DNA of 64,000 bases from Paramoeba atlantica (lineage: Eukaryota > Protista > Discosea): NCBI GenBank assembly GCA_977017575.1, contig CDRNVI010000099.1, positions 62,001-126,000 on the forward strand. Direction: 5' to 3'. A program made the translations under genes and the position numbers. Under the pieces are notes generated by a model. It saw only the letters and a list, made by a program, of their open reading frames with translations. It searched no databases and was not told the origin of the DNA. This document shows, one piece after another, positions 1 through 26,883 of this stretch; the first letter of the stretch is position 1, and each line of letters opens with the position of its first letter.

Positions 1-2099
1 ATTTTGGAAGGAGGTTATGTGGTTCAGACCAAGTTGGATAGTGCAATGCGCTCGACCATCAAACACTCCCCCAATTTCTTGGGAACGCGCCAACAATCTC
101 TTTCCCGGATCTCTGTACCGTCCAGAAAATAGTAACGAGCCTCCAATTTTTTGCATTACCGAGGAGGAGTGGAAGGAATACATGTATGTAGCATATGAGG
201 ACTACAGATGGGATCCGCTCGCACGCCAACGAATATGAGTGGTGGTGTGAGTCGTCACTATTTCCCGAATGTTTTTACTGCTGCAAGACATTACTTATGG
301 ACGCCGCCGCTGGTCACCAAATGTGATCCATGGTTATCGATATTGTCGTACATGTTCAATTCACGACAACCTTCAATTACACCTCATGTGATCGCTAATC
401 AAATATTTATCCGTGGCAACAGCGAGAAACTTGGCTACTTAACCGAGCATGTGAATGAAGTGGCGGGTGAGGATGAGACAGACGATGACGATGAAATATC
501 GAATGGCGACCTCAGTGGGGAAGAGTAGTTCTACAGAAGTAGAACTTCTAAGTAGAACTTCTATAGAAGTAGTCCTGTATTGCATTCAGGAATCATTTTT
601 GGGAATGTTTTGAAAAGATTATTTTATGGCCGAATAATGTAAGTGAAATATACAAAATTTTGTTTTCTCATTTTACGTGGTTTTTTTCCGTCTTTCCTTA
701 TCATTCGCTTTGTTTTTTCCCATTGCAAAAAATATTTGCATTTTGTATTCTGACATTCGATTTATATTATGTGCGAAACAAATACGATGTATCTACGATA
801 TTTTTTATATTACGTACGTATATTTGATAGGTACGTACATTTGATACGTACGTATGTTTGATAGAAGCACAAGAGCTCATTGTGCACCTATAATATAAAG
901 ATTGCGGTGGTTGTATAACTACCGCTCTACCCTCGATTATTGAAAAAAAAGTGAACAAAAACAGTGAAAATACAAAGAGGAACACAGTAATATAATAAAG
1001 GAAAAAAATATAAAATGAGGCTCCGGTGGTCCAAAACTGAACAAAAAAATTAAAAAAATGGGGGGTCTAGGGGGGGGTCTAGGGGGGGGGGTCTAGGGGG
1101 GGGCATACCGCACGGAATTTTTTTTGAAAAAATTATTTTTCGAAAAAAACCGCAGAAGGGGTAGCCGGGGTCTTGGCGCGCATTTTCCACCCCCCTACCC
1201 GGGGGTGACCCCCCTCGTATGCGCAGGACGGGTCTGCCAAGTTCGTATTTTTTCGGAAAAAAAATTTTGAAAAAAAATTCAACTTGGCGAAAAAAATGGT
1301 AAAAAAATTATTTTTTCAAAATTGTTTCCCCTATTGTATTTTAATAGTTTGGGACCTATACTATCTTTCAACGACGTTGTTTTCGCAAGGTACGCCTTTT
1401 TGGAGCCGTGGTACGCCTCACAAAATGACCCATTTTTGGCCAGAAAACGCGAAAAAGTAATTTTCGGACTCAGAGAGGTCTTTCTGTGACGGAAGAATGG
1501 TGTGATTGGAGTCGGATTCTCTACCCATTACGTTCTGCAGCCTTGAATTCTTGCCTACGAGTGATTTCCCACACGTAAATGTCGGATTTAGCGCTCTCCG
1601 AGCAAAACTACGCAAAAATGCCCCCATTTTTACCTAAAAATCGCCAATTTTTGACTCAAATCCTTCCGGTCTCTTCGGCTTTCGTAACCAATTTTTCTTT
1701 TTTAGGCTCTTCGTTAAACGCGGAGGTAGTTTTCAACGCGAAGCGCGCAGCATGAGTGACTTCTAAGTTGAAAACAACCACCGCGTTTAACGAAGATTTT
1801 TATAAGTAATCGCTGCGTATATACACTGGCGAGAAAAGTAGGAAAACTACTCAAACGATAAACATAATTGGCAGTATATGTAGAATTCTACACGTTCTAA
1901 ATTGGGATTTAGCCTGAAAATTATGTTTCTAAATTAAAGTACACTACAGTTACCTCACTTTCACGACTCTACTTTTCCCTATGCAGTCAAAGACACAACC
2001 TTCCCCGGAAAGACAAATCTCCCCTGAGTCATCTTCCCTTACGGAGGGTCCGTTACGCTCTTTCTATGAAGGCAGCTCATGGTACTCTGTGTATCCCAG

Positions 2100-2905
2100 C
2101 GGGTAAGTGTGGGTGAGTGCGGGTAAGTGGGTACACTTACCCGGGTAATTACCCGCACTTACCCGCTAGGTGGGTAATTACCCGACTTACCCTTTTGGCT
2201 ATGATTAAAGTGCTATATGGATATTAAAGTGCAAAAGTTTCTATTTGGATATTAAAGTGCAAGCATCTTAATATCCAAATGGGCTGAACCAGGATCCAGT
2301 GCAGACGCTAAATTGCGAGTTGCCTACGCAAAGGAGGCTTGAGACATAGCCTGCACGATGGAACGGGTTTGAAAGCCCGTCCTGGTAGCTACGGTCGGGT
2401 AGACGTGCTCGGGGCGCAAGGCGTCGAGTGCCGCCTGGTAAGGGGATAGCAAGACAATGAGGGTCTTTCACGTTGTCTTTTAACTTTATGTTTCAACTTT
2501 TCCTTTCAACAACTTTTCACTTGCTTCTTGGATCTTAAACGTCAATTTCATCTTTCCACTTGATCACTACTTGAAATTACAGTTCTTCAATGGCTTGCGT
2601 GTTGCTTTCTTGACGCGTTGATGTCGACTGCATCGTAAAAAAGGAATCTAGAGGCCCGGTTCTATTTCCCGACTTTGCGCCGCGTTGAAACTGCTTCCGA
2701 ATGGCCCTTCAAGCATTCGGGTGCGACAGTTTCCATGATGTGACTCAGAACTTATTTGACTGAAAACCTTGTTTTGGACAAGTGAAAAAACCTATTTGGA
2801 TATTAAAGTGCTATTTGGATATTAAAGTGCCTATTTGGATATTAAAGTGTTTATTTGGATATTAAAGCGCATTTGGATATTAAAGCGCATTTAGATATTA
2901 AACTG
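2100..2905. repeat. GGGTAA/TTACCC clusters and 18-19-bp ctatttggatattaaagtg repeats
   Basis: Direct and inverted copies at 2100-2192, ~2200-2280 and ~2792-2900; probably transposon subterminal repeats. Confidence 0.75.
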
Positions 2906-3768
2906 CGCCCCGGGTTAGTGAGTTTACCCGTAGTGAACCGCAGTGATTCACTACGAGTAAACTCCAGGGTATGTACAAGTACATACCCTGGAGGAACATA
3001 TTGGAAAAGCGACTTAAGGAAGCCTTGCAGATGCCCTTTTATCTAAATGAAGAATTGAAATTTCCTTAGGAATTATTGAAGCAATGGAGGCGAGCAAGAG
3101 CAGATCGCCAGAATCAAATTGATGATTCTGAAAAGCATTTTGAAGTTGGACAATTGACACTTGATCGTTTGCGCATTAAACTGGGATCCTTAAAAAGGCT
3201 CCGATACTAGCTACGTGCAATCTCATCATAATCCCATTACTATCTTTATACTTATAATGCTTATACTACTTAGTATAATAAGCGGTAGTTAATTTTACTC
3301 GCTCTCGCAGACGCAGTGTCCGATTCACCGTGCACCTCTTCTCTGCAATTCGATGTGTTATTCTACAAAAATCCACCTGCCTGGCTCTCGCACAATGCAT
3401 GATATTCAATATCATGTATTTATTTTACCGTGTTGGCCACATGTTGTACAACTGTGCAATGATATAATTTGCGAGACGCAGCGTCCGTGTTCACAAAGGA
3501 CCTCATTAATACCTGAGTGGATTACATGTCTTGCGCTTAGCGACTGATACAAAGGAAGCACGGGAAATACTCTTCCTAAAAAGAATGAGAAGCGCTGGCG
3601 GTCAGGGTATGAGCAGATTCGAGCTGCGCTCAAAGCAAGCAACTCCTCGGAAATAGCAGCTTCGTTAACAATGTGAGACCAGGAGAATATGATGAAAATA
3701 TTTCATTTACTTATTCCACTCCGTGTACTCGGCAATTTGTGTGAAACATCCGACACGACTGATCTTCA

Positions 3769-4260
3769 ATGCGTGAATGGTTTCTTTACACTTTTCGAAC
3801 AGTGGTATACTGCCACGGGAGGCAGCTCAAATCTTGCACAGTATCTTCGGATGTGTTATCACTAGGAGCTATACTCGGATTTTTGTACACGGAATTTTCT
3901 ACGGACAAAGCTATCAATCAGATGAAGCGTATTGTCGTTGAAGCGATGTTAGTATACTTCGGGATAAAGAGTAGGGTGCGACGACTTTTGCAAATAATGG
4001 AACACGAGAGATTCTTGAAGCGGAATTCGATCTCATGTTGGACGATTATGCAACGTCAAGTTGTGGAAGATTATTGGAAAAGCACTGGTTCTCAAAAATA
4101 TAAACACATTCGAGTCTTCCGACAAACAACCAATCGGATCTACTCCGAAACACATATGGAACGAGAATTTGGGCACATGCTCTACATTGAGAACAAAAAA
4201 CAGCATCTATCCGATGAGCCCCTTCAAGGAATGGTTCGAAACTTCTTTAATGATCCTTAA
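3769..4260 (+). mobile_element. hAT transposase C-terminal (dimerisation-like) remnant
   Basis: EDYWK....KY..I....NRIYSETHMEREFG resembles hAT W..Y/F..S...ER.FS; short subterminal-type repeats upstream. Confidence 0.5.
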
Positions 4261-4272
4261 ATGAATCTTTAT

Positions 4273-4339
4273 GGACCTCCACGTGGTCTTCCCTGGCACT
4301 GCTATTCCACTGATGGTACAGACACCGACCTACCGATAC
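4273..4339 (+). ncRNA. HDV-like ribozyme, 5'-truncated copy
   Basis: ACC-UCCACGU-GGU-CUUCCCU-GG(P1.1)..CCGA(J4/2)-CCUACCGAUAC; 5' P1 strand missing. Confidence 0.62.
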
Positions 4340-4391
4340 TTACCTACGTTTCTGTACTAATTTCATCCCGTACTTGACACACACTCAGCAT

Positions 4392-4457
4392 GGGGAAGTA
4401 TGGTCAGGACCTCCACGCGGTCTTCCCTGACACTGATAGTACATCACCTACCGATAC
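4392..4457 (+). ncRNA. HDV-like ribozyme, 5'-intact copy with degenerate P4/J4-2
   Basis: P1 GGGGAAG/CUUCCCU with G-U at position 1, P3 ACC/GGU, L3 UCCACGC, P2 UAUGGUCAGG/CCUACCGAUA imperfect. Confidence 0.7.
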
Positions 4458-4627
4458 TCTTATCAGTATTATTAACAATTCTTAGTAATTGTTATAGCAG
4501 TTTGTTATGGTGTTTGGTGATATTCTTCATCTATGACAATTTTGTACAAAACACGTTTGTAAGTTTTCAACAAAAACATATCCCACGTGACCCAGTGTTG
4601 CCCGTTTGGGGGTCATAAGCCAACCGG

Positions 4628-5335
4628 TCAAACAATTCGGCACTCATCCATGTCAACGAAGACACACTCTGGAATGAGAGGGCTCGTGCATGAGAGCACG
4701 CTTGGTCCACCGTGCGCTTGATCAGCCAGAAGAGTGCTGTCTGTGAAAAAGGTCTGATCCAACACAAGACCATTCGGAAGCGTTGTGAGGTCATACGTCC
4801 CGCGTAAATAGAAATTGTACTTTAAGGAGAGCGTCTTAAGACCCTGGGGGAGAGCGTCAAAGTGTAGGGCCTGTTTGAAACGGTTTAGAGCAAGTCCCAT
4901 GTGTTGCATCGTGTGTGGTACGCAACTCAAGTCCAATGTCCCGGAAAATTGGTTAGAAGTCAGGTGAAGACCGACCATTTGTCGAGGAAGAAGTTCTAAC
5001 GGGAGGGAGCCGCTTAGTTCATCGTTTTTGTACAAACTCAGGGATAAGAGGGTGGGGGGCAATCGTTCCCATATTAATGTCTCATCTTTCACTTTGTTTT
5101 TCATCCCGATATGAGACCAATCAATGTTGGTAACGCGCTGATCCGCGTCGCATTGTACTCCATACCATTGACATGCTGCAGTCGCGGTGGTGTTGAATTC
5201 CCATCCCATAGGGATGAGATACAAGGGTTCCAGAAATTGTGCAAGAAGATATTCGGGGGGAAGGCGGGGGTTGACGCGTCCAAGACGGCACGCGAATTCT
5301 TCCGAGCTCTTTGCTTCGTGTAGGGAATCTGACAT
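4628..5335 (-). CDS. LRR family protein (235 aa)
   Basis: Motif RLGRVNPRLPPEYLL, cap W..C.WYGVQC, then ~22-aa LPxxLxxLxLxxNxFSGxLDL repeats; pyrimidine-rich tract upstream of ATG. Confidence 0.9.
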   Translation of the reverse strand: MSDSLHEAKSSEEFACRLGRVNPRLPPEYLLAQFLEPLYLIPMGWEFNTTATAACQWYGVQCDADQRVTNIDWSHIGMKNKVKDETLIWERLPPTLLSLSLYKNDELSGSLPLELLPRQMVGLHLTSNQFSGTLDLSCVPHTMQHMGLALNRFKQALHFDALPQGLKTLSLKYNFYLRGTYDLTTLPNGLVLDQTFFTDSTLLADQAHGGPSVLSCTSPLIPECVFVDMDECRIV

Positions 5336-5753
5336 ACGGACCGAATTGAGAAATAGAAGGGTATTGAGATAAGTGTAGATTAGTTTGTGGTTAGTGTAAA
5401 TTAGTCCAGTAGTGGTGTGCAGGCAAAAGTAGTTGTGAATGAATGCTGAAAATACAGTACTGAAAATAGTTCGAATAACTCCGAGTTACATTTAGAGACA
5501 TATAACATAATATTGAGGATAAATCATCATGCACTTATGATACGCTTATCTTATATTCGTCCGTCCATGTAAAGTAGAAGCCCAGCTCATCGGCATGGTA
5601 ACTGATCTTCTGACTCGCCGGTACAGTCCTCAAGTCAGCGTCACTTTGTTCAAGGAGTATGGAATAAAGGTATCCCGGAAGGCGATTTTATAAAGCGAGA
5701 CGAGAATATGTAATATCATATTGTGTGCCGATCATATGTACTAGCAAAGAATC

Positions 5754-6413
5754 CTATTTGTACTGATACAGTATTTGCGCACCCTGTCCCTTTTGTATCA
5801 GTCGCTGCACCATTCCATTCCAACCTACTATCTGTGTTCGTGCAAAATTGTACTCTGCTTTCCTTGGCATCACATTTTCCTCTAATATGCCAGTAAGATC
5901 CGGATTTTTTTGCAGCATGAGCATCCGCAAATTTGGTGGCAGGGCGTGAAACTCCACTTCCCCGCTCAGCAAATTGCAGTCCAATGCGATACAATCTAAA
6001 CTTCGAGGCATACCCGCGAGGTCCACCTTACCGGTAAAACCATTTTCGCTCAAATAAAAATGTTGCAAATGTAGGGGAAGCTGTGAAAATTCAACTTCTC
6101 CGTGTATTTCATTGGATTGCACGCCGAAATACACCAAACCGGGGGGCAACGCCCACGAGAGCGTGCCTTTTAGCTGTCGCCAATCCCACCGGATCCAGTT
6201 CACTTTTTGCGCCCCATCGCACTTGATCCCCTCCCAGGAACAGAGCGCAACGGAGGGGCGCCATGTGGGATGGCTCGGGGAGAGGTTGCGTACCACGCGC
6301 TCCATAAGGTATTCCTCGGGCAGACCCGTCCCGGAGAGTTTGCCTCCGAACTCGGCACGCTGGGGAGAGGGGGAAGACTCCGATGCGGCCCACCAGTTCG
6401 GCAAGAGGTTCAT
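5754..6413 (-). CDS. LRR family protein (219 aa)
   Basis: GKLSGTGLPEEYLM motif, CSWEGIKC cap, four LRRs. Confidence 0.9.
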   Translation of the reverse strand: MNLLPNWWAASESSPSPQRAEFGGKLSGTGLPEEYLMERVVRNLSPSHPTWRPSVALCSWEGIKCDGAQKVNWIRWDWRQLKGTLSWALPPGLVYFGVQSNEIHGEVEFSQLPLHLQHFYLSENGFTGKVDLAGMPRSLDCIALDCNLLSGEVEFHALPPNLRMLMLQKNPDLTGILEENVMPRKAEYNFARTQIVGWNGMVQRLIQKGQGAQILYQYK

Positions 6414-7961
6414 GTGCAGGTTTTAGTGTACAAACGAAAAACAAGGGGAAACAAGCTCTTTTTTAGTGTGGCCAATAGCAGGAAAATGAAACCCTGCAGC
6501 GGGATAATTTTGTGTTACACACTCATCTGAGACGTATATTTTTTGTATAGTTTCTATACCTTGCTGCTTTATTTTTCTTACCTTTTACTGTATCTTAATG
6601 GCCTCACAAGCAACAAGACCGTATGCGTCGCAGGACCCTAATACGGGACCACGTGACGTGACCGAAACTACGTTGTCCGTTCCCTTGCAACAACACCCTA
6701 CATGCATAAATGATACACATCATTTATGAATACGGGAATGTGGTAAGCAGCTTAGCTGAGATATTTTTCTCCGTGTTGGTTGGGTAGTTGTTGGTCCACC
6801 TCGCCTCGGTAGAAAAACAGATCTACTGCATTGTAAACGAGAGTTAACATCTTGCGAACATCTTTCGACGTGCGTCAAGAAGGCTGGGATACGGAACCAG
6901 GGTGTGCAAGTACGTGCTGTACCCGCACGTTTAATAAGCTCTTTTTTTCTTTCCTTTTTTTTACAGATTTCAAAAATTTGTTAGCACTGATCACAAAGAT
7001 CACGAGGGCCACAAACGGTGGGTCACAAAGATCCCAAACACCCGACGAGATAACAAATAATGGGTCATTAAGATTTCAAGTGAACCGATCACAAAGATAA
7101 CAAACAAACAAACAAACAAACCAATCAGGTAATATACACATCCGATTACAAAGATCCCGTGCAATGAGTCATAAGGACTTCATAGATATCAAACAAACGA
7201 TCACAAATATCCTAAGTAAGGCGGCGAAAAGATCACAAAAAAACAGAATGGTCGTGACATTTACGATGCATGTCACATCGGAAAAGACATCGCTCAGAAC
7301 CTGTTGATGTGCTATTCCGTACATCAATAAAAGGTGAATGAAAACTAATAAAAGGTATATGAATCTTTTTTTTGTAATATGAATCAAGAAATTTACAATC
7401 AATTTATAGATAACCTTTGTCGAGGTTACCAATCTCATGCCTGCTATTCCTCAGCATACAGGATATGCTTACGTATACGTTGTATACAGGGCACAAACCG
7501 CACCACCAAATACAAAAAAAAGTGAACTTGAATATTGAAATTTAGACCTTCAACCGGCTATAAAAGACAAACAAACCGCTGTTTCGCGGTGTTTCACAAT
7601 TCTAACCCGCAGCCCCTCGAATAAGGTGCGGTACAGATTGTTTATCACGTGAATTGCGCAGCTGTTTTCACCAGAACGTTGCTGCGGAAAACTTATTCAT
7701 GGGATGGCCATGATGATAATGAAGGGGAAGGTGAAGGGGATGGCGAAGATGATAGTGAAGGGGACGAAGCGCACAAAGAACGGAATGATTAAATCAGCGA
7801 GCTCCGACTCCTGTTCTCCAATTTCGTGACAACAACACCTTTCGTGACCACACGCACGATCATTCACTTAAAACACAAAAAGAAAAAATGCAAGTTTCAT
7901 TTTCAGATTTTATTTGAAAAAAATAAGGGAACAAGGTGAAGGATAACTAAGGGGGGCATAC

Positions 7962-8215
7962 AGTATATGGAAGGCCCTCGCGAAGGGCAATTCGTATTCC
8001 TTATTGTTCCCGAAGTAGGATCAACGTTTGGCTAATAAATTTATAAATGATGCAGCTCATCACTTTAATCGGAATAACACTCGAACATGGACTATGCATT
8101 CATTGCGGCATGGGAAGGTCACTGAGCTTCGAGTCCGTGGCGTTCCTATTTCAGAGAGGCAATTAATGGGACGATGGCGCTCTCACTCGTCAGAACAATC
8201 CAATGTCACAGCGTA
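7962..8215 (+). mobile_element. Tyrosine recombinase C-terminal fragment (DIRS/VIPER/TATE type)
   Basis: LLFPK..HSLRHGKVTELRVRGVPISERQLMGRWRS; frameshifted second copy at ~15835-16075. Confidence 0.78.
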
Positions 8216-8459
8216 CCAGCGCCAACCAAGGGAGTCCAACTCTCCGTAACTAACCAGCATGTGACATCCAATGTCACAGCCTACCAGCGGGAACCAAGGG
8301 GGTCCAACTGTTCAATTAACCAGTGGCAACATGAGAGTGTTGCGGTACTTCACCATGTCTAACTGCCCTGCAGCATGCTAAGTCCAGCTCTATACGTTTC
8401 GAATGTCATCGGGAAGACCGAGACATCCAATTCAAGGTGTACAACTCGATCGAATGATC

Positions 8460-8532
8460 GCTTCCCCCTCCTACCCCGGCCTTTGATAGACCTGCCCCAG
8501 GCTTGGGACTGGAAACTGCGGAGTTAAGAAGC
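8460..8532 (-). ncRNA. Twister self-cleaving ribozyme (type P1 with P5 hairpin)
   Basis: GCUUCU-UAA-CUCC-GC-AGUUU-CCAG-UCCCAAGC-CUGG-[GGUC..GGCC]-GUAG-GAGGG-GGAAGC. P1, UAA, P2, P4, L4 UCCCAAGC, both pseudoknots and GAGGG are present; one P2 mismatch or bulge. Confidence 0.88.
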
Positions 8533-8867
8533 CATAGGAGTTATGAAATCAAAAGTAAACAACACTTTTTTTAAGACAAATTATACTAAATCACAGTTCT
8601 CAGACATTGCGTTTAGTCTGTCATACACATTTTAGATGTGTTCTCTGTTATGCACATTACAAAGGGGTTGAGCGACAGCAATTAATCAAGGGGGTATGTC
8701 ACGTCGTACACTTTTTTGAGATAAGAAAGTTTATAAAAGTTTCCAAAACAATAGAATTTATTGAATAATTGAAGATCCCCCTAATCCCCCCATTTTCTCT
8801 CCATCTTTCTCTTTATTCTCTTTGAATTCTCTTTATTCTCTTTAAATTCTTTATCATTCTATTTGAT

Positions 8868-9764
8868 TCAATGATTCTCGAGCCTTATCTGTGTGTTATA
8901 TACGCACAAACCGTACTCTTGCACATGCTCAGGAAAGGGCGATCTTGTTATATTGCTACGCAAGTTCACATTATCTGATAAATCCAAACCCATCAATGAA
9001 GATGGAAGCTCCTCCAAGTTGACATCACCAGAAAACATATTGCGCGACAAATCAAGGTGCCGAATCCCCGAAGGAAGTTGTCGGAGATCGAGTTCGCCGG
9101 ACAACTGATTTCCAGAGAGATATACTTGACATATGTTAGGCGGAAACAAAGTCAAATCAAGTGAGCCGGTGAGACGATTTTCGCTAAGGTTCACATCTTG
9201 CATATTGACCGGCAGACTCGTCAAACACACAGTTCCATTGAATCTGTTGTCATTCAAAGTCAAATCTTCGAAACAGAGCGGAAGGGAAGTCAAGTCCAAC
9301 TCGCCTTCAAACCGATTTTCGTACAGAGTTAGTGATCGCAGTTCCGAAGGCAAGCGCGTGAGCGGTGCTGTCCCTTCTAGAGCGTTCTGACACACATTAA
9401 AATCGTACAAACTATGTGGGAGATAAATCAAGTTCATAGTACCTGACAAATCTCGTTGGGTCCATCTCACGTGGCTGACTTCTTCCCGCTCGTTACAACT
9501 CACACCTTTCCACTCGCACGCTGGCGTGTGAAGACTCCACGATTCGTCCAAGTTGTGGACTTCCGCGAGGAGACGAACGAGTAGATACTCCTGAGGTAAA
9601 TTCGCAGCGCTCACTTTAGCAATACGCGGTCTCGTCTTTGTAGTTTCTTCAGCAGAATGAGTGTTGGAAGGTATTGGGCTTTCGACTTTACGTCGTTTAG
9701 TCGACGGTTCCTGAATATCCGAACATGTGAGCCGCACGATCGTTTGTAGCGTTAAGTGTAGCAT
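8868..9764 (-). CDS. LRR family protein with KRRKV motif (298 aa), paralog A
   Basis: STKRRKVE, RIAKVSAANLPQEYLL, CEWKGVSC, ~8 LRRs; closely similar to 16649-17545 and 19602-20492. Confidence 0.92.
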   Translation of the reverse strand: MLHLTLQTIVRLTCSDIQEPSTKRRKVESPIPSNTHSAEETTKTRPRIAKVSAANLPQEYLLVRLLAEVHNLDESWSLHTPACEWKGVSCNEREEVSHVRWTQRDLSGTMNLIYLPHSLYDFNVCQNALEGTAPLTRLPSELRSLTLYENRFEGELDLTSLPLCFEDLTLNDNRFNGTVCLTSLPVNMQDVNLSENRLTGSLDLTLFPPNICQVYLSGNQLSGELDLRQLPSGIRHLDLSRNMFSGDVNLEELPSSLMGLDLSDNVNLRSNITRSPFPEHVQEYGLCVYNTQIRLENH

Positions 9765-10329
9765 GTAAAGTAAGAAATTACTTATTAGAGATTGTTTTTT
9801 AAAAAATAAAAAATAATTCTATGAATGTACTGTACCCCGTAGTTATCAGTCACTACGTTTCGTGGAAAAGAGACATAAACTTTAATAGGGCTACGTGTGC
9901 CCGCCCCCCCTTTGATAGGGCTATTTTGTCTAAAAGGCCAAAGATTTGTTTAGGGGGGGCATTTTTTTTATGAAATCCGCCGATGAAAGAAGCAGCGGCT
10001 GTTTTCCGGTGCATAGCTATCCGAGTGTAAAATAGTGTTTAAAAAAGCTGCAAGACCTTGTTTAGGAACTATAGAAAACTTCTCCCGAAAATTATTGTCC
10101 TATGAATTCTCGGGAGGATCTGGTGCCGCGTGGACCGTTAAGCAACTGGATCATTTCGCGAACTCCAGTGGCTCGTGTATCACATGTAGTCGGACCTTTT
10201 GCTTCCGGACAAGAACCTGGTATCTCTCTCTTCCCCAAAATTCTCTTTCAGCACGTCCCTCTCTCCCTCCCTTTGTTCCTCCATCAATATACCGCAGAAA
10301 ACACTTGTCGGTGCAAGACAAGTTGTGCG

Positions 10330-10910
10330 TGTGTCGTTCTTCGTCTTCCGTATCAAAACTTGCGAAGTCATAATATTGCCGAGGAGACCATACGGAAAAT
10401 AAAGCGAGTCGGAGAAAAAGATTATCAATCAAGAATGAATCGTGGAGGTCGCGACCGGAAGCGTGAGCGAGCCTTCAATAGCTCGCGACAAGATTTTATG
10501 GCAAAGGTTCATGAAACCCTTCTCGGTCTGTTGAATGATCATATCCCTATCGCTCGAGATAGGGTGCTCCAGTTGATGAGTCATCATGGGGCATTTCGGG
10601 AAGGACTGGGTGAAAAAGCAAAAGAAAGAGCGTATAAGCACTATCGTTACGTGTTTTGATGGACTCAAGCTATCACACCATCAGATATTGGTCAACGTAT
10701 AAGACGACAGTCGCATCATTTGTACTCGCAGCACGATGTTCGTCAGTACAGCTCTGTTATTTTCGGAGATAAAAGTTTTGTCATGAGACTAGCGTTAGCG
10801 TCGACGGCGAACTGAAGGGGAAAAATTTAGCGCCAGTGGGCGTGATTTCAGTCAAAGTCGTTCGGACGAAAGAAAAGCAAACACTGACTATTTTTCTTGC
10901 CGCCTTATTT
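10330..10910 (+). mobile_element. Highly degenerate Tc1/IS630 transposase remnant
   Basis: Read past the stop of ORF 10102-10659: VIFGDKSF and FFLPPYFP resemble the first-D and LPPYSP motifs. Confidence 0.5.
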
Positions 10911-11453
10911 TCCGTCAAGGATAAGGGGGTGTATCCTCGTCTAATCCTGCAGAAATACAATTCCTGAAAATTGATTCCTGAAAATTCGAGTTACTGAATT
11001 TAATGCACTTTAAATAGTCTTTTTTAGGTATTTGTTTTGTGATTTTATACTTTCGCTTTATTCGTGCGCGTTATAAATTCGTGTGCGTTATCTATTTTGA
11101 GAACGACGACGACGACCTACAAATTGTTCTTGTGTGTATTATGATGACCTACAAGTTGTTCTATTCATCACTCTCAGAACGTCATCCATCCGCTTTGATC
11201 ACAAGATTTTTGCAAACTGATTGCGGGAGACACTCAGTTTGACCATGATTTTCGGCACGGTCCCAAAATCTAGCATCACGAAAAAGTATTCGGGTCCAGT
11301 TTTTCCAGCTGACCAGGCAATAGTTCTAACGGAACGTTGCCTGAGAAACTACTACGTTCTAGATTCAAGGAAAGAAGCGTGGAAAGTAAATCCTTTTTTT
11401 TTCCAACTTACTACGCTTAAAGCTTCACACATATTTCCATTATTTTCACGTCC

Positions 11454-13515
11454 TCACGTGCGCAACGAAGGACGCAAGTTCTCTGCGGGCATCCGACTTA
11501 CCAGCATGCGCGCTTGGGCTCGCATTAGAGTCACATTCATTTCCGTGAGGAGGCGTTGGAAGGCCTTTCCTCTCGAAAGAGTGCCCTGCGAAGCGGCTGA
11601 GCGACGCTCGGCGACCTCACGGAGAATGGCCTGCGCGCTGTCGGACCACGATCCGAAGGATTCCACTGCCATAGCGGTGAATCTGTACCCTTGGGATTCA
11701 GCCTCGAGGCGCTCCGTTTGTGCTCCGTAGCGTACCGCTCGGCAAAGGATCCCGCTTTCCACACGTTAGCACCTCGGACTCAGTCCGTATAATATACCTA
11801 TGTGTTCTATGAACACTTCTTTTTTTAATTGAACACATAGAACGCATTGAACACTTTCTGGGGAGGTACACATCCCACGAACATGTTGATTATTTTTCAT
11901 AAACCTTCTTTGTTTTGCGCATATCCAAGTGATTACACATGCCCGAGCATACATATACCCGAGCATACATATACTATATGTATGTGGGTTACTGAACGTG
12001 GGTAACGCAGAAGCCCAATACCAAGCCGGTAGCTAGGCCAAAGTTCGGGAGGAATACGTCTCCTGGTCGGGTGGAGCCACCGCCAGGGCCGTAGGCTAAC
12101 CTCTCGTTATGGGGCGAAGTGCGCCTTGGTACACACGTCGTAGAAATGGTCGACCAGGGCGTTGTGCCGAGAAAATAGACCGTAGCCACTTTTGCAAGCT
12201 AGGGCGTGCCTGCCATCTGGTTCGGCCTAGCGGTTGGCTACACTTGTCCATAGGGCAAGGGCGGGGGGCATTGTGGACGTCTGCCCCGAGCCACCAACGG
12301 GCCAGGGCGCGGAACACCGTAGGGATAAGGGCGTACCCCAGCTCTTTGGATGGGAGAGCAAAGGCCCAGTTTGCGGCCCCATCCCCACTTTGAGAAAGCC
12401 ATCTTTCTTTAGTTGGTGTTTTCTTTAGTTGGTCTTTAGGTGGTGTTGGATTTGCCGGGGGGACTCAGGATCCTCTGGTAAGAGGTACCCTGTATGGACG
12501 TTGATGAGGGGTCTTCCGGATAGTTCGTTTACGTGGGTCATTGCCTCCCGGAATCCTTCTGCATCCAGTGCATCCCATCCGTCTTGGCTGGCTGCGAAGG
12601 AGACTGAGGAAGCGTACGCCGCTGAGTAGAAAAGAGAAGAGGAAGTCCAAAACCGCCATATTTTTTTCTTCGCTGAGCGCTGAGCGCATCCGGAAGGATC
12701 GAGTGAGCAAAGTGCGTCCTCTAAAGCTTGTAGCACCGCGGTGTCGAGACGCAAACATAGATCTAATAGGGGTTTAGGGGCTGTGGTGCGGAGGGAGAAG
12801 ACGAGCTGACAAAAGCCAGAGCACTGGCGGATGAGGGTTAACGCCACTTGGGGATCGAGGATATTCTTTATAGCGCTAAGTGTGGACAATGCTGGGGCCA
12901 AGGCGTGTTCGCGGAGGTAATCACTACAGTATTGCGCGGATCCCACCTGGCTGCCTAGGATGCTGAAATTGCCATCGAAGAGAATTCTTTGTTATGGGAT
13001 CTCAGGGAATAAAGTCACGAGGTGTGCGGACGGGGGGTGTAGGGTCACTTCACACTTCTGAGTGTTAAGAAGGAGTCCGAGCTGTCGACTTTCCCGCTCA
13101 ATGACTTCGAGGGCTTGCTTGACGAGCGCCGCCTTGCCGGCAAGTACCCCGTCGTCAAGGTACCAGACATGGAGGAAAAGTTCTTCAGGAAACTCAGCGT
13201 TAATAAATAAAAAAAATAAATAAAAATTTGCGCGAGATGATGGATTACCAGGGAGAAAAGGAGCGGTCCCAAGGGATCGACTTGTTGAACGCCTTCTGCG
13301 GAGTGCAGAATGTGTTGCCCAAAGGTGACGTAGCTGTCCGTTTCGTAACACCATTCTACCCATTTAGAGAGGGGGTTAGGAAAGTGCTTCTGAGTCAAGG
13401 AGGGAAAGGCGGATCTTGAGACGTCATTAAACGCGTTTGAGAGATCAATTTTGCACAGGACGAAATCTGGGTCGTCAGCATGCTTGGTCACCGTCTGACG
13501 ACAGAGATGAATCAT
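11454..13515 (-). mobile_element. Degenerate CRE/SLACS-clade non-LTR retrotransposon
   Basis: KIDLSNAFN, GVQQVDPLGPLLF, WYLDDG, LGLLLNTQKCE, RPGDVFLP, MAVESFGSW across several frameshifts. Confidence 0.88.
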
Positions 13516-13696
13516 GCGTTCGGCGCCAGCGGCGGTGGCGACACCATACTCTCCCTCTCATTAATTTTTATAAATTATAAATTATAACAAAAAATGAGAT
13601 ATACCGTGGAAACATTAATTAAGAATTACACTAATTAAGGGAAAATGGTTTTCAAAAAAACTTATTCCCTTAATTAGTGTTCCCTTATTTTATGTA

Positions 13697-13923
13697 GAAG
13701 GAGGTCAAGGAGGCCTTCAGAAACCTCCTAATCCACTACGGGTTTAATCCAAAGGTTCTCATCCAAACTATGGATCTACCAACACGCCGTCCTATCCAAA
13801 TTGCGCTTTCATTCGTTGTTCATGCCAGCCTTACTCATTCATTGAGAGGCTACAAAAGAGAACCACCCACCATATCAAGAAGTGGATGAACTTTGCCTCT
13901 GCCACCAGTATTGAAACCTTATA
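13697..13923 (+). mobile_element. Third copy of the mosaic junction fragment
   Basis: gaaggaggtcaaggaggccttcagaaacc..aaactatggatctaccaacac..; truncated by a Tc1 TIR at 13924. Confidence 0.88.
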
Positions 13924-14177: not shown

Positions 14178-14359
14178 TATTATTAGAAGGAAAAATTATT
14201 AATAATTTTACAGGTATGGGTGTGACAGATAATTACGGGGGTCAAAATGCGACAGATATCTAGAGGGGTCCATCGCCAAAAAAAGCAAGGGAACGAAAAG
14301 TTACAGAAACTTTTTCTTTATTGCCTAGGAAGGTGCCTTTGCACCCCAATGGGGTACTA

Positions 14360-14787
14360 CCGTACAACCCCCCAGTAAGAGTGGGTTTTGACCAAATCTC
14401 TCTTACTGGGGGGTTATGCTTTTTAGGCCAGTTTTCTTTTTTCTCCAAACTTTTTTGACAACCTTTTTTTTAGAGTTTTTCTCTTTTTCGAATAGTTCTG
14501 TCTAAAAGAAATTGTCATTCTGTCATTGATTTCATTTCATCTACTTTTTTTAAGTTATGACAACGGACATTCGCATACAACTTGCGTTAGAAAGCGTTGT
14601 CCAAGACTCCAGCCCAACTATATTTGATTTTCATATGCTTCATATAAAATATTGATTCTTTGTTTTTGATTGTGCGTTTTCTTCTCTGTGCTTCAACCTC
14701 ATTTGATTGCCCAGAATAAGGGCTAAATCTCTCTTACTGGGGGCCAGCCCAAAAAGAGCCAAATCTCTCTTCCTGGGGGGTATACGG
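14360..14787. mobile_element. MITE with TA|CCGTA..TACGG|TA ends; related copy at 62085-62398
   Basis: Repeated cccccagtaagagag motifs in inverted orientation. Confidence 0.78.
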
Positions 14788-16391
14788 TATAAGCTGAAGA
14801 CATACGTCTACGGGGTAAAAAGAATCCCAGAGAGTGAAGCGGATGATGAAGGAGATGATGGGGATAATGAGGGGAATGATAAAGGGGATGGAGGGTATGA
14901 CGAAGGGAACGTTGATGGGGATGATGAAGGGGACGCTGGTGGAGACATTGAAGCTAACGAGCTCCGAATCCTGCTTTCCAATTTCTTCCGTAGAACTCTA
15001 CGATCCCAACATTACATACTCCCATCATATCCCATCATTGTTCATAATCCCATCATTGTTTACCAATAAAAAACACGAGCTTTCTTTGATTGAAATTCAT
15101 AGTCAAGGTCCCGCTTCATCACAAAACGTTTTTCAAAATGTATGAAGTACCGTACTATCCGTACTAGGGAGATGTATGGGTATACTAAATTTTGTCTAAA
15201 AAGCAAAAAATAATTTATAATTATATTTAATTTATCAGTAGTTGCTAGAAAAATGTTGCCTTGACCTTAAAATGCGATTTCTTGCCGTGTGATGACTAGA
15301 AAGTGGATCTGTCGCTTCTAAAAAAGGGATGTCTCCCGCTCCTGTTGCTGGGAGGGGGGGGTAGGTATACTAAGTGGGCACGGGTATACTATCCTGGAAC
15401 ATAGTTTAGTATTAAACAAGTTTAGATAGTAGATTTTTTTACAAATTCTTTTGATTACGATTTCTCTTTCCATGACCTTTCCACCGTACGGTCGAACTGG
15501 TACGTGGCTCCGGGCTTTGGACCGGTATAGCAGGCTTAAAGGAGACCGAGGTTACCGAAAGGAAGTGGATGTTGTCACGGGGGGTATTACAGTCCATGCT
15601 GTGCATTCATCGTCAGTTAGCCCCTAGGACACACTTCATTTGCCTCGGCCTGCTATTCTCGTGAATATGAAAGTCCCGATCCAGCCACTAGTTGTTTTTC
15701 CAACGGCGGCCACTGCGCCTCCCCCCCACTAAGAAACGCGGAAAACCGGAATTATGGGATGATCATGGCGATAATGAAGGGTAAAATGAAGGGGATGGCG
15801 AAGGCGATAGTGATAGTACGGTATACAGTGGTTAATGGAAGGCCCTCGCGAAGGGCAATCCAGGTTCCTTATTGTTCTCGAAGTGGGATCGACGTTTGAC
15901 TAATAAACTATAAATGATGCAACCCACCACTTTAATTGGAATAACACTCGAACATGGACTAGGCGTTCATTGCGGCATGGGAAGGCCACTGAGCTTCGAG
16001 TCCGTGGTATTCCTATTTCAGAGAGGCAATTATTGGGACGATGGCGGTCTCACTCGTCAGAACAATCGAATGTCACAGCCTACTAGCGCCAACCACGGGA
16101 GTCCAACTCCCCGTAAATAGCCAGCATGTGACATCCAATCATTGGCAATGTCACATTGTCACATAGGCAATGTCACCGCCGACTTGCCACAACCCAAGGG
16201 AGGCCAATTCCCCATAACTAACCAGCATGTGACATCCAATGTTACTGCCTACCAGCGGGAACATGAGAGTGTTGCGGTACTTCACCATGCCTAACTGCCC
16301 TGCAGCATGCCAAGTCCAGCTCTATACGGTTCGAATGTCATCAGCAAGACTGACACATCCAATTCAAGGCGTACAACTCGATCGAATGATC

Positions 16392-16464
16392 GCTTCCCCC
16401 TCCTACCCCGGTCTTTGAGAGACCTGCCCCAGGCTTGGGACTGGAAATTGCGGAGTTAAGAAGC
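16392..16464 (-). ncRNA. Twister ribozyme, second copy
   Basis: Core identical to 8460-8532; differences only in loop or P5 positions (GGUC/GACC perfect stem; AAUUU vs AGUUU). Confidence 0.88.
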
Positions 16465-16648
16465 CACATGCGACGTACATAAAGTAAACAATACGTTTTT
16501 GTAAGACAACTTCTATTAAATCACAGAAGACAAAATTTATTGAATAAATGACGCCCCTCCTAAGCCCCCGCCCATACATTTTGATTCCCTTCATCATGCT
16601 CTTTATTCCCCTTAAATTCTCTTTACTCTCTCTATCTTTTAATTTGAA

Positions 16649-17545
16649 TCAATGATCCCATACATTTATCTGTGTGTTATATACGCACAAACCGAACTCT
16701 TGCATATCTTCAGCAAATGGCGATCTTGTTATGTTGCCACACAAGTCCACATTATCTGATAAGTCCAAAGTCATCAAGAAAGATGGAAGGTTCGTCAAGT
16801 CCACATCACCAGAAAACTTATTCTGCGACAAATCAAGTCGAAAAATACTTGCAGGAAGTTGCTGCAGATCGAGTTCGCCGGACAGCTGATTTCCAGAGAT
16901 ATATACTCGCGATATGTTAGGCGGAAGCAAAGTCAAATCAAGTGGCCCGGTAAGACAATTTTCGCTAATGTTAACACTTTGCATACTATCCGGCAGACTC
17001 GTCAAACACACAGTTCCATTGAACCTGTTGTGATTTAACGCCAAATCTTCGAAACAGAGCGGAAGGGAAGTCAAGTCCAACTCGCCTTCAAACCGATTTA
17101 CGTACAGAGCTAGCGATCGCAGTTCCGAAGGCAAGCGCGTGAGCGGCACTGTGCCTTCTAGCGCGTTCCCAGGCACAGCAAAATCGTACAGACTATGTGG
17201 GAGATGAACCAAGTTCATAGTACCTGACAAATCTAGTTGACCCCATTCCACGCAGCTGACTTCTTCCCGCTCGTTACAACTCACACCTTTCCACTCGCAC
17301 GCTGGCGTGTGAAGACTCCACGATTCGTCCAAGTTGTTGACTTCCGCGAGGAGACGAACGAGTAGATACTCCTGAGGTAAATTCGCAGCGCTCACTTTAG
17401 CAATACGCGATCTCGTCTTTGTAGTTTCTTCAGCAGAATGAGTGTTGAAAGGCATTGGGCTTTCGACTTTACGTCGTTTAGTCGACGGTTCCTGAATATC
17501 CGAACATGTGAGCTGCACGATCGTGCGTAGGGTTATGCGCAGCAT
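16649..17545 (-). CDS. LRR family protein with KRRKV motif (298 aa), paralog B
   Basis: Colinear with paralog A, intact frame. Confidence 0.92.
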   Translation of the reverse strand: MLRITLRTIVQLTCSDIQEPSTKRRKVESPMPFNTHSAEETTKTRSRIAKVSAANLPQEYLLVRLLAEVNNLDESWSLHTPACEWKGVSCNEREEVSCVEWGQLDLSGTMNLVHLPHSLYDFAVPGNALEGTVPLTRLPSELRSLALYVNRFEGELDLTSLPLCFEDLALNHNRFNGTVCLTSLPDSMQSVNISENCLTGPLDLTLLPPNISRVYISGNQLSGELDLQQLPASIFRLDLSQNKFSGDVDLTNLPSFLMTLDLSDNVDLCGNITRSPFAEDMQEFGLCVYNTQINVWDH

Positions 17546-19601: not shown

Positions 19602-20492
19602 TCATTTTAACCGAATCTGCGTATTATAAATGCACAAATCGAACTGTCGCACACGGACAGGCACTTGTGACCTTGTTGTATTACTACACAAGTTCCAATT
19701 ATTCGATAAATTCAAAGTCATCAATGAAGATGGAAGTTTCGCCAATTCCACATCACCAGAAAACGTATTGCGCGACAAATCAAGTTGCGAAATCTTTGAA
19801 GGAAGTTGCCGAAGATCGAGTTCGCCGGACAATTGATTTCCAGAGAGGCGTACTTGCCATATGTTAGGCGGAAGCAACGTCAAATCAAGTGGCCCGGTAA
19901 GACGATTTTCGCTAAGGTTCACATTTTGCATATTGACCGGCAGACTCGTCAAACATACAGTTCCATTGAATCTGTTGCTATGCAAAGTTAAATCTTCGAA
20001 GCAGTAAGGAAGAGAAGTCAAGTCCAACTCGCCTGCAAACCGATTTTCGTACAGAGCTAGTGATCGAAGTTCCGAAGGCAAGCACGTGAGCGGCACTGTC
20101 CCTTCTAGCGCGTTCCCAGGCGCATCAAAATAGTTCAGACTATGTGGGAGATGAACCAAGTTCATAGTGCCTGACAAATCTAGTACGGACCATCTCACGT
20201 GGCTGACTTCTTCCCGCTCCTTACAACTCACACCTTTCCACTCGCATGCTGGCATGTGAAGACTCCACGATTCGTCCAAGTTGTGGACTTCCGCGAGGAG
20301 ACGAACGAGTTGATACTCCTGAGGTAAATTCGCAGCGCTCACTTTGGCAATACACGATCTCGTCTTTGTAGTTTCTTCAGCAGAATGAGTGTTGAAAGGT
20401 ATTGGGCTTTCGACTTTACGTCGTTTAGTCGACGGTTCCTGAATATCCGAACATGTGAGCCGCACGATCGTGCGTAGGGTTAAGCGCAGCAT
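19602..20492 (-). CDS. LRR family protein with KRRKV motif (296 aa), paralog C
   Basis: Colinear with paralogs A and B, intact frame. Confidence 0.92.
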   Translation of the reverse strand: MLRLTLRTIVRLTCSDIQEPSTKRRKVESPIPFNTHSAEETTKTRSCIAKVSAANLPQEYQLVRLLAEVHNLDESWSLHMPACEWKGVSCKEREEVSHVRWSVLDLSGTMNLVHLPHSLNYFDAPGNALEGTVPLTCLPSELRSLALYENRFAGELDLTSLPYCFEDLTLHSNRFNGTVCLTSLPVNMQNVNLSENRLTGPLDLTLLPPNIWQVRLSGNQLSGELDLRQLPSKISQLDLSRNTFSGDVELAKLPSSLMTLNLSNNWNLCSNTTRSQVPVRVRQFDLCIYNTQIRLK

Positions 20493-22952: not shown

Positions 22953-25356
22953 TTGATTATTAATAGAGGGCTGCGCAGTATGTCGTGGACCGGTATCTAG
23001 CGTGTTTATGGAGCTGTGATAATGTACGGTATTCAATGTCCCGCATGGAGAGAGTACGTGCTAAGTGTATGCCACGACTTCCTAGGGAAATCTGAACAGG
23101 GAAGATAGAGACGGCTTGGAATCTCCTTCTAGCTGTTAAGCGCTTCCTTTTCTTCCCGGAGGACAAGCTATCGCAAAGACAGCTTGCACGCGAACTACGC
23201 ATGCGAGCTCACCTTGAGGGCTCAGAAACCTCGGCCCCGACCACCCCCAACCCGGCCAACGGCTCCCCTATGTCGGCGGTCAAACGCGCGACGGAACTGA
23301 TTAGAGCAGAAGCTTTCTCGAGAGCCGCCAAAATTCTGGAGGCACCGCTCGACCCACCGGCCAATCCCGCGGCAGCCCTTGCACAAGCCAAACGACTTCA
23401 TCCTTCTGAGGGACCCTACACCACGGGGAAATATCTCTACGATAAGGACCGACACGGGTCCCTGCCTTCCCTTGCGGATGTAGCTAGAAAGGCCCAAAGC
23501 CTGGCACCGCTTCGCGCCCCAGGCCCGACAGGGTGGACTAAAGAACTCGTAACCCCAGTTCTAATGGACAACGGTCCACGTGACACAGTCACGTGGACCA
23601 TACATGGAATACTAACCAACTCTCTCCGTCCCTCGATGCGCGAGCTGCTTACGGGGGCATCGTTGAAACTATTTACCAAGCCGGGCGCCCCAGCTGGACA
23701 TCACTCCTCGTACCGCCCCATAGCGATGGGGGAATGCCTTCTGAAGGTCGCCGGTCTTCTGGCCCTGGAGAAAGTGAGAGAACACCTCCCCACATTCTTC
23801 CAAGGACTCCAGTTCGGAGCACAATACACCCAAGGGTGTGAACATATTATACACAGTGTCCGAAAGCACTTCCGGGACAGGCCCGATGAAATCATAGTGG
23901 CTGCGGACCTGGAAAATGCTTTCAATATCTCGCGGTCTGTCATCTTCCGGGCCCTGGAGGGGGACCCGAAGCTACTCCCTCTGGAGGGTATCACCCTCTT
24001 TAGCTACGGGAAGGCTAGCTCTCTTCACTTGGGGGAAGGTACATCTATTATAAGTTCCAGAGGGGTTAAGCAAGGTGATCCTATGGCTCCTATCCTATTC
24101 GCCATAGGGATACACGGGGCCATAGCCAAAGTGGCTGCTAAATTCCCTGGAACCCTCAAAGTCTGGGCGTCTCTGGATAATGTTACCTTTGCAGGGGAGC
24201 CCAAGGTGTGCGGGGCGGCCCTGGAGGCAATGCAAGGGGAGATTAAGTCACTAGGGCTTAACATCCCTTTTGAGCATAAGGCCGAGGGCATGCAGGCCAA
24301 GGCCAAATGTGTCCTGCAAGGCCTACCTCAAGGCCAGTCGACTAAAGATCAGCGTCGCTCCCTCTGCGAGGCGGCCCTACTGAAAGGCCCATCCACCACG
24401 CAACTGGTCTGCATGCGGCAGATTCAGAACGTTCATTCCACAAAGTGGATGAATGCGTGGCCCAACCGGCCGGAGTACTACATGTGGGACCCGCAGTGGG
24501 AGACTACGGCCCGTCTCCGGTACTTGGTCGCCCGTACCTCGGAGCCTGAGCTCCAGTGCGTGTGCGGTGCAACCCTCCGCAACGAGGAGTTTTGCGTACA
24601 CGCACTGGATTGTAAGAAGGTTAAGGGGAAAACCCAGGCCTCCCGCCACAAGGAGGTCAAGGAGGCCTTCAGAAACCTCCTAATCCACTACGCGTCTAAT
24701 CCAAAGGTAGGTTTAATCCAAAGGTTCTCATCCAAACTATGGATCTACCAACATGCCGTCCTATCCGAATTGCGCTTTCAATTCGTTGTTCATGCTAGCC
24801 TTACTCATTCAGTGAGAGGCTACAAAAGAGAGCCACCCACCATATCAAGAAGTGGATGAACTTTGCCTCTGCCACCAGTACTGAAAGCTTATATACCTCA
24901 CGCGGATGGAATCTTACAAGCGCATCGCAATTATGGCACCTTTGGACCGGGGAAGCTCTTTGCCATATGCAAAGTTCTTGTGACCCGAATGTGCTACAAT
25001 CCCTCCGCTCCCGAATAGAGGAAGAGAAGAATGTACCCCGCCGAGGCTTGATAAGACCAGCAACTTATACTCTTGATGATCTTGCAGATTTCAACCGAGT
25101 CAAGGACATCCTACGCAAACAGTATGAAACGAACACGTTACAGAAACTGAAAAAACGGGCCCCAATAAGTTCAAAATGGTGGGTCCTACCGGTTGATCCT
25201 GACACAGCTAAACATTTTGCGGCAGCGATAAACGGAATAAAGAACTATAAGCTTTCCCGATTTGCAGCATCGATTATGACCCTGACACCTCTCCCCTCCT
25301 GCGCCGCTCTCCGCAGATGGGGAATATCATCACACTCAAATACGACGTGCCCCATA

Positions 25357-26883
25357 CAGGGGTGCGGGTCTAAAGGTGGGGGGGTCTAAAATTCGTAAAA
25401 GTTGTCCAATTTTGGAAAATAATAGCGCATTGGATAGCTCTCACAGAGTTGTATGTTTTAGGCGCATTAAAACCCTGTGATTTTTTTTGATACCACATTT
25501 CGCTTTTTTCCCTCGCAGGAATTACATTTTTTACTAGAAAATGCCCCAAATGCGCGCTCGCTCGAGGACTTCCCGTGGAGTACTGAGCGATAGATCGTAT
25601 TCTTCCCCCGCCCCCGTCAAAGAGAGTCACCGCATGCTTTTGGTGGCGGAATACGAGCGCACAGGATCGTACTCCGCTACGGCGCAGCACTTTGGTGTTC
25701 ATGAGAACACTGTAAAACGTTGGGTTGAACGTTTTACCCTTACGGGTGACGTGTTAACGGCATCCCGAGAGCGTGTCTCGACGGTGGTTACCCCTGCGTT
25801 CCTGGATGTGGCTCTCAAGCTTGTCGACGAGGGGTATCGCGACCTTGTTTACGGCGTAGAGAGCTGGAGCGATCTTCTGCGAGAGATCCGTAGCCAAGGA
25901 TTCACCTGCAGTCGACGGACCCTAGTCGACACATTGAAGAAGCAAGGCGTTGTGCTCCGCACTCTTCGGCGACGACCATCACTCACACTCGAACACAAGG
26001 AGAAACGGTTGCAATTTTGTAAGGCGATGCTCGAGAAGAGCGACGCTCAACTCCTTCATTTTGTTTATTGTGACGAAAAGAAGTTTACTTGCGGTCGTGG
26101 GCGTTCCGGGCGAACTTACCTTTGTCGGAGGACGGACCCCCATAAGGAACAACGAGGCGAGCTAGAATCATGGTACGGCGGAAATGGGATTATGGTTTGG
26201 ATGGGTGTGAGCCTCAAACACGGCTTCCATCTCCACATTTTCCCTCCTCGAAATTCAGAAGGCCAGAAACTCACCGTTACGGGTGAAATTTTTGATCAGG
26301 CTATGAAAAAGCCACGGGGCTTCCTTCAATATTTAAAGCGACATCCAGCGGCCATTATTGCCATGGACAACTGCCCGGCCCACAACAAGGCGCGTGCCAC
26401 GTTCCGTGATACAGGAATTTCCGTTCTCCCCTGGCCTGCAAAATCTCCAGACCTGAATCCGATCGAAAATTTGTGGTCTGTGATGGACACAGACAAAAAT
26501 CTTCTTCGACCCCGAAATCGACAGCAACTGGAAGCCGCCATTGAGGGGTCTTTCCTTAAATTGAAACAGACCCACTCTGCAACGGTTCAGAAAACGTTGA
26601 AGAGTTTCAGGAAGCGTTGTGAAATTGTTATTAGTCGGAACGGGGGGCACTGTGGTTACTAATTGTCTTTTGCAATCCAAATTACAGAAATTATTGACAT
26701 CACTAAAGTATTGCAATATGTGTTTTTGACCCTTACATGAAAGGGGGGTACCCCCCAAACCCCGGATGCTACCTATCCTAAAACATACAACTCTGTGAGA
26801 GCTATCCAATGCGCTATTATTTTCCAAAATTGGACAACTTTTACGAATTTTAGACCCCCCCCACCTTTAGATTCGCACCCCAG
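25357..26883 (+). mobile_element. Complete Tc1/IS630-family transposon with ~105-bp TIRs, at TA
   Basis: TA|CAGGGGTGCG left end; inverted copy at ~26778-26883 with altered last bases; splits the host retroelement in its CPI|CS zinc knuckle. Confidence 0.92.
25541..26662 (+). CDS. Tc1-like transposase, DD32E (373 aa)
   Basis: N-terminal HTH (TVKRWVERF), CDEKKF, MDNCPAH, WPAKSPDLNPIENLW; intact frame. Confidence 0.93.
   Translation: MPQMRARSRTSRGVLSDRSYSSPAPVKESHRMLLVAEYERTGSYSATAQHFGVHENTVKRWVERFTLTGDVLTASRERVSTVVTPAFLDVALKLVDEGYRDLVYGVESWSDLLREIRSQGFTCSRRTLVDTLKKQGVVLRTLRRRPSLTLEHKEKRLQFCKAMLEKSDAQLLHFVYCDEKKFTCGRGRSGRTYLCRRTDPHKEQRGELESWYGGNGIMVWMGVSLKHGFHLHIFPPRNSEGQKLTVTGEIFDQAMKKPRGFLQYLKRHPAAIIAMDNCPAHNKARATFRDTGISVLPWPAKSPDLNPIENLWSVMDTDKNLLRPRNRQQLEAAIEGSFLKLKQTHSATVQKTLKSFRKRCEIVISRNGGHCGY

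Follow-up and report, generated by a model that had tools for sequence, protein, structure and literature searches.

The window, by which we mean the whole 64,000-nucleotide stretch analysed here, holds at least eight LRR ORFs, and those between 4.6 and 20.5 kb all lie on the minus strand. On the same strand, behind the stop codon of one of these genes, is a compact motif with the parts of a twister ribozyme, and beyond it, coded on the other strand, is what remains of a tyrosine recombinase. Both the co-directionality of the motif with the LRR gene at 8868-9764 and the distance of 335 nt from its stop codon had been given in a first-pass annotation of this DNA, and the ORF coordinates return the same values. 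The features of the locus, together with two further twisters in the window, are:

8868-9764, minus strand: LRR gene encoding 298 aa; its LRRNT_2 and LRR_1 matches are weak.
8533-8867, minus strand: interval of 335 nt from the stop codon to the twister, on the fast-diverging side.
8460-8532, minus strand: type-P1 twister ribozyme motif of 73 nt, recognized by Rfam alignment, descriptor, covariation and constrained fold.
8319-8459, minus strand: spacer block of 141 nt directly downstream of the twister, 94-96% identical to the other cassette copies.
8198-8309, strand not assigned: 68-bp tandem repeat, present twice and overlapping the end of the recombinase remnant.
7965-8249, plus strand: tyrosine recombinase remnant, the C-terminal ~90 aa only, with the HxLRHG box and the GRW...Y tail.
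16392-16464, minus strand: paralogous twister in a second cassette, with 3 differences from 8460-8532.
45092-45160, plus strand: divergent third twister of the same architecture, P5 present and P3 absent.

The motif at 8460-8532 had been proposed to match the twister consensus element by element, and this is borne out part by part on the minus strand. Stem P1 is formed by 8532-8527 and 8465-8460 (6 bp, with U.G as the innermost pair), and leads into the predicted scissile step between U8526 and A8525, with A8524 next; this is the step named originally, and it agrees by homology to twisters. The 5′ strand of P2 (CUCC, 8523-8520) faces a 3′ strand at 8475-8471. An imperfection in this stem had been read as a C-U mismatch; the imperfection stands, while its form is less certain, as the constrained fold alternatively gives four Watson-Crick pairs with U8473 bulged. 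The GC of the second pseudoknot (8519-8518) pairs with G8502-C8501, and a linker of 5 nt, AGUUU (8517-8513), takes the place of a P3 stem. P4 joins CCAG (8512-8509) to CUGG (8500-8497) around the L4 loop UCCCAAGC (8508-8501), and is followed by a P5 hairpin of 5 bp at 8492-8478, which was absent from the original list of parts. The GAGGG at 8470-8466, in which G8470 is the presumed general base, then runs directly into the 3′ strand of P1. Both pseudoknots are complementary in this copy, the L4 CCC with the GGG of GAGGG and GC with GC, and the core, comprising the A after the scissile bond, UCCCAAGC and GAGGG, is identical to the Rfam consensus throughout. Judged from its sequence and pairing, the element is a genuine and structurally complete type-P1 twister, with P5 present and P3 absent.

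Formal support for this assignment comes from three directions. In a permissive search, the Rfam twister-P1 model (RF03160) aligns over its full length (model positions 1-68) with 29.7 bits and an E-value of 1.2e-4 in 301 nt. No Rfam match in the window reaches gathering level, which for RF03160 is 67.2 bits against the 29.7 found; the shortfall arises because the P3 stem of the model is deleted here and P5 is counted as an insertion. The gathering score is a curation cut-off and not a biological feature, and P3 is optional in twisters. A descriptor that demands L4, P4, GAGGG, AA, GC, at least 3/4 pairs in P2 and at least 4/5 pairs in P1 matches the window three times (8461-8531, 16393-16463 and 45092-45160) and 200 shuffled windows not once; at 8460-8532 the match has 4/4 pairs in P4, 3/4 in P2 and 5/5 in P1. 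Lastly, we trained a covariance model on three near-identical copies and applied it to the window and to L003, a further contig of the same assembly (ctg3520l; ENA ERZ24900291), which gave six members of the family. Descriptor and covariance model were both run over the window in full, including 9785-9822, places that were masked or omitted in later BLAST comparisons. Once the six are aligned, pairing over the stems and the two pseudoknots amounts to 90%, with the GC/GC pseudoknot paired in 100% of cells and CCC/GGG in 89%, the failures being those of a truncated copy. Seven pairs are changed on both sides, a number that 0 of 500 shuffles reach and that slid controls (0-1) do not approach. The compensatory changes fall in P1, P2, P4 and P5, and one divergent copy, that at 45092-45160, supplies nearly all of this signal.

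Downstream of the twister, the minus strand passes through the 141-nt spacer and into the 68-bp repeats, whose copy number varies between cassettes and which seem to be derived from the recombinase C-terminus. The recombinase remnant has a single close relative among the called proteins. It is 92% identical to a 150-aa ORF on L003 and 40-60% identical to Phage_integrase-type proteins, with 47-53% identity to the Phage_integrase ORF of another locus, L004. Taken as a unit, the relic spans ~570 bp, with the twister as its outer edge and the recombinase C-terminus, on the other strand, as its opposite end, so that the direction of the twister is inward and antisense to the recombinase. The block 7967-8596 recurs at 15835-16526, in the second cassette of the window, with 92-96% identity, and in three further cassettes on L003. 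Relic and LRR gene together form a duplicated cassette, present in two copies in the window and three on L003. Positions 1-20453 of L003 are collinear with 900-11033 of the window, with flanks that are 93-95% identical, and the two differ in the number and state of their LRR/relic cassettes; on this comparison L003 would be the alternative haplotype or else a segmental duplicate of recent origin.

The copies of the twister are in various states of repair. At 16392-16464, the differences are a linker change, a change in the loop of P5 and a third that converts a P5 U.G pair to U-A. The third twister (45092-45160) is fully paired in P1, P2, P4 and P5, with stem sequences that differ from those of 8460-8532, and is followed by a spacer of ~158 nt and a long array of ~123-bp hairpin repeats (45319-46566). 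On L003, the copy at 14290-14362 is intact, the copy at 10624-10699 carries a GGA insertion straight after the cleavage-site U, while the copy at 16915-16987 has lost GAGGG and the 3′ strand of P1 at a rearrangement junction and has a changed L4. Counting variable columns among the four full-length cassettes gives the following values, from the gene to the relic:

LRR coding end: 18.6% variable columns.
3′ flank on the LRR side: 32% variable columns.
19 nt abutting the twister (8533-8551): 56% variable columns.
Twister: 11% variable columns.
Spacer: 7.8% variable columns.
68-bp repeats: 4.4% variable columns.
Recombinase relic: 11.7% variable columns.

The switch in divergence coincides exactly with the 5′ edge of the twister. 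The spacer is the best conserved part of the cassette outside the repeats, and the twister is conserved no better than the dead recombinase fragment; its preservation therefore needs no selection tied to the LRR gene. Within the twister, the eight positions that vary among the four full-length copies spare all 18 core nucleotides, and five of the changes keep pairing. This is weakly suggestive of constraint on the twister, the chance of missing the core being estimated at ~0.1. The boundary itself suggests either that the relic side is of more recent origin or has been homogenised, or that the LRR side evolves fast, and the lower divergence of the relic side could reflect gene conversion or function. 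Just outside the boundary, at 8548-8537 on the minus strand, is an imperfect 12-nt duplicate of the first bases of the twister, running through the UAA and the P2 strand with 9/12 matches. An equivalent duplicate of the twister start with 11/12 matches lies near 16990-17005 on L003, and the remaining cassettes have an unrelated 19-nt patch where it would sit.

Taken together, these features are best explained by a probably cleaving twister that belongs to a mobile-element relic and was copied with the LRR gene, and that is not a selected 3′-end mechanism. We hold this reading to be rather probable as a whole. The motif and its structure, the covariation, the make-up of the cassette, the boundary in divergence and the decay of some copies are shown directly, while the catalysis, the mobile origin and the transcription are what we infer. 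The twister may once have lain in the terminal (inverted) repeat of an element, or may have stood at the front of a small element, led by the ribozyme, that inserted alongside. The relic and the neighbouring LRR gene would then have been copied jointly as a cassette, and it is because of this joint duplication that the ribozyme would now be found 335 nt behind an LRR stop codon. Since the twister shares its strand with the LRR run, a read-through precursor would carry it in sense. Were the minus-strand run expressed as a single polycistronic RNA, the ribozyme would sever it downstream of the LRR gene, and such a cut would be a tolerated side effect where trans-splicing and polyadenylation make the mRNA ends. 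An intergenic cut is expected to be largely harmless under trans-splicing-coupled polyadenylation, and relic ribozymes would therefore persist.

Among the alternatives, the one that fares best, though we consider it improbable, is that a small independent non-coding RNA unit starts with the twister and continues with a ~140-nt spacer and tandem repeats, its 5′ end being set by cleavage, and that the recombinase remnant is an unrelated neighbour. The layout 8532-8460/8459-8319/8309-8198 parallels that of 45092-45160/~158-nt spacer/array from 45319, and the low variability of the spacer noted above speaks for such a unit. However, the two spacers share no sequence similarity, and the predicted structure of the spacer at 8319-8459 is ordinary (z -0.6). 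The 68-bp repeats overlap the recombinase C-terminus and seem to come from it, which speaks against a chance neighbour, and no free-standing copies of such a unit occur in ~150 kb of other loci.

It is slightly less probable again that the element is a decayed or misfolding fossil that no longer cleaves. The nested minimum-energy fold of the RNA, at -29.2 kcal/mol, lies 12 kcal/mol below the canonical nested twister and sequesters both L4 and GAGGG, which at face value would favour a dead ribozyme, as would the imperfect P2 and the visibly broken sister copies. The Rfam consensus sequence, however, has a comparable gap (-27.2 vs -12.9 kcal/mol); the gap is therefore not diagnostic, and we dropped the minimum-energy fold as an argument against activity. 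The positions at which twisters are known to be sensitive, namely the pseudoknots, the general acid A and the general base G, are all canonical in 8460-8532. In a 2024 high-throughput study of ~2,600 natural twisters, 94% were active, imperfections in P1, P2 and P4 were largely harmless, and P5 stem-loops had little effect (PMC11662667). The concern, raised with the original description, that the P2 flaw might be lethal to cleavage thus appears unlikely to be justified, as flaws in this stem were largely without effect in natural twisters (PMC11662667). The 8460-8532 RNA probably cuts itself between U8526 and A8525, and we regard activity in vitro as fairly likely.

The least probable of the alternatives is the role that the first-pass annotation had proposed, in which the twister is kept because its self-cleavage forms or destabilises the 3′ end of the LRR mRNA independently of trans-splicing-coupled polyadenylation. 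Its position on the strand of the LRR gene and of the entire minus-strand LRR run, and its occurrence downstream of two LRR paralogues in the window and of others on L003, are what such a role would predict, and the substitutions that miss the core and mostly preserve pairing point the same way. Against this, all of the copies stem from the duplication of one cassette, and for that reason they are not independent. The ribozyme is also not retained wherever the gene is retained: the truncated and certainly inactive copy at 16915-16987 on L003 sits behind an intact 298-aa LRR ORF, and no twister accompanies the close paralogue at 19602-20492, whose homology to the cassette stops ~19 nt past its stop codon. 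A covariance-model search of the window likewise finds no twister at five other LRR ORFs, and the third twister, at 45092-45160, lies outside any LRR 3′ flank. With conservation that does not exceed that of the dead recombinase fragment, membership of the relic, damaged copies and a twister-less paralogue, the proposed role in 3′-end formation or decay is not supported.

The reading as a relic passenger has weaknesses of its own, chief among them that a full-length parent element carrying the 8460-8532 twister was not found. L004 and L006, the nearest full-length recombinase loci retrieved from the same assembly, have no twister within 10 kb on either side. No inverted repeat, internal complementary region or copy of the terminal bases is present in 7900-8620, and neither the window nor L003 contains a partner twister on the plus strand. 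Truncation of the relic could account for the missing inverted partner and internal complementary region. The relic ends at about 7965, and no reverse transcriptase or RNase H occurs at the twister locus; in the L004 relative, an RNase H ORF lies upstream of the recombinase ORF. Of the features of a DIRS-like terminal repeat, an adjoining tyrosine recombinase ORF is present, as a C-terminal remnant only. The core-sparing positions, in being weakly suggestive of constraint, also sit less easily with a passive relic, as does a low divergence on the relic side that could be due to gene conversion or function, and the Rfam score of the twister falls under the gathering threshold.

Other leads to a parent were followed and set aside. 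A reverse-transcriptase ORF at 23201-24859 pointed to L001 and L002, where neither this twister nor the relic block occurs. Twisters are likewise absent from the metagenome contigs L005 and L007-L009, and an exact-pattern scan of them for this lineage was also empty. A retrozyme-like pair, made of the second twister and a variant at 15464-15544, was rejected: it has no counterpart in the first cassette, and the variant is without the catalytic G. This variant (minus strand) and another on L002 (13404-13500, plus strand) are twister-like, with L4 = UCCAAAGC and a 3′ core of (C)AUGG rather than GAGGG. Their pseudoknot is compensated as CCA/UGG, but the G of the general base is altered or lost. 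They reach ~20 bits with model R1 (E ~0.007), and may be a separate variant lineage or dead copies.

L002 also contains two inverted arms, at 13379-13417 and 13687-13725, which are 39 nt long, 90% complementary and 269 nt apart. In each, a leader of ~25 nt precedes the 5′ half of the variant twister, which is directed inward. The whole has the appearance of a ~350-bp unit whose terminal inverted repeats bear ribozymes, so this genome does have terminal inverted repeats that contain inward-facing twister pieces. A wider proposal follows the same lines: twisters would be working, inward-reading termini of mobile elements here, perhaps including DIRS-like elements, and their relics would still cut host precursors behind genes. 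We offer this only tentatively and consider it doubtful at present.

Several other features of the window and the related loci were recorded along the way. Perfect 85-bp inverted repeats at 25378-25462 and 26777-26861 flank a 373-aa Tc1/mariner-type transposase ORF (HTH_Tnp_Tc3_2, DDE_3), and the whole (25378-26861) looks like a young DNA transposon; ends related to these repeats are also found near 39704-40066. A spliced-leader-like core lies at 37060-37083 on the minus strand, directly upstream of a retroelement ORF (35008-37026), with an exact match to CAGTTTCTGTACT at 37071-37083 that continues as TTTGTTG. This core is the one feature that points to Euglenozoa; the housekeeping proteins are singletons at 90% identity, and the best relative of the helicase is no more than 37% identical. 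On L004, a pair of neighbouring 5S rRNA genes, scoring 98.7 and 53.1 bits, lies at 4573-4829 on the minus strand, ~3 kb upstream of the RNase H and recombinase element.

The element at 8460-8532 belongs to an established ribozyme class, and both its host and its setting are unusual. Its main use is as a marker of mobile-element history, and it probably represents no new gene-expression mechanism; its possible link to a tyrosine-recombinase element is the part of the finding worth pursuing. The biological roles of twisters are largely unknown, and the sole case worked out in the literature searched is that of Perere-3 (PMC8501958), which is also the only link between a twister and a retroelement that the search returned (PMC8501958). 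A precursor-based protist genome with several twister lineages, some of them beside recombinase relics, raises the question of whether twisters serve other classes of element, and also that of the fate of a self-cleaving RNA inside a polycistronic transcript. Should twisters prove to sit at the termini of mobile elements here, perhaps DIRS-like ones, this would be the first link between a ribozyme and a tyrosine recombinase and the first report of twisters in this lineage, and in DIRS-like elements ribozyme cleavage would set the 5′ end of the element RNA. Our literature search returned no paper tying a self-cleaving ribozyme to a tyrosine-recombinase retroelement and no report of twisters in kinetoplastids. 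The searched text of the 2024 twister survey contains no mention of Euglenozoa, kinetoplastid, trypanosome or protist (PMC11662667).

Compared with the type-P1 twisters of Rfam (RF03160, clan CL00120; e.g., rice Osa-1-4), the element described here has the same order of elements, both pseudoknots and all of the strongly conserved nucleotides. It differs in having a 5-nt linker for P3, a 15-nt P5 hairpin, G-rich junctions, a bulge or mismatch in P2 and a score of 29.7 against 67.2 bits, and in its host, a spliced-leader-type protist. Self-cleaving RNAs behind genes are known from the rodent Clec2 genes, where hammerhead ribozymes in the 3′ untranslated regions lower or shape mRNA output. This is the kind of role first proposed for the present locus; unlike the Clec2 hammerheads, however, the twister shows no sign of conservation tied to the gene, and broken copies coexist with intact genes.

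Other parallels are with mobile elements. HDV-like and hammerhead ribozymes serve retroelements, at the 5′ ends of R2 and L1Tc and in Penelope-like elements. The idea shared with our preferred reading, that of a twister carried in a mobile-element relic, is that a small self-cleaving RNA processes the RNA of a co-transcribed element and that its relics persist, while both the ribozyme class and the element class are different here. Retrozymes are a further case of ribozyme-bearing retroelements (PMC4918200; PMC7761336). Within the twister class itself, the comparison is with Perere-3, a non-LTR retrotransposon of Schistosoma mansoni in which a twister carries out 5′ processing (PMC8501958). 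At the present locus the twister adjoins what is left of a tyrosine recombinase, coded on the other strand, rather than a non-LTR element that shares its strand; target-site duplications that would contribute to P1 were not detected, and a full-length parent was not found. What the two have in common is a twister attached to a mobile element at its edge and reading into it, present in multiple copies of which some are decayed.
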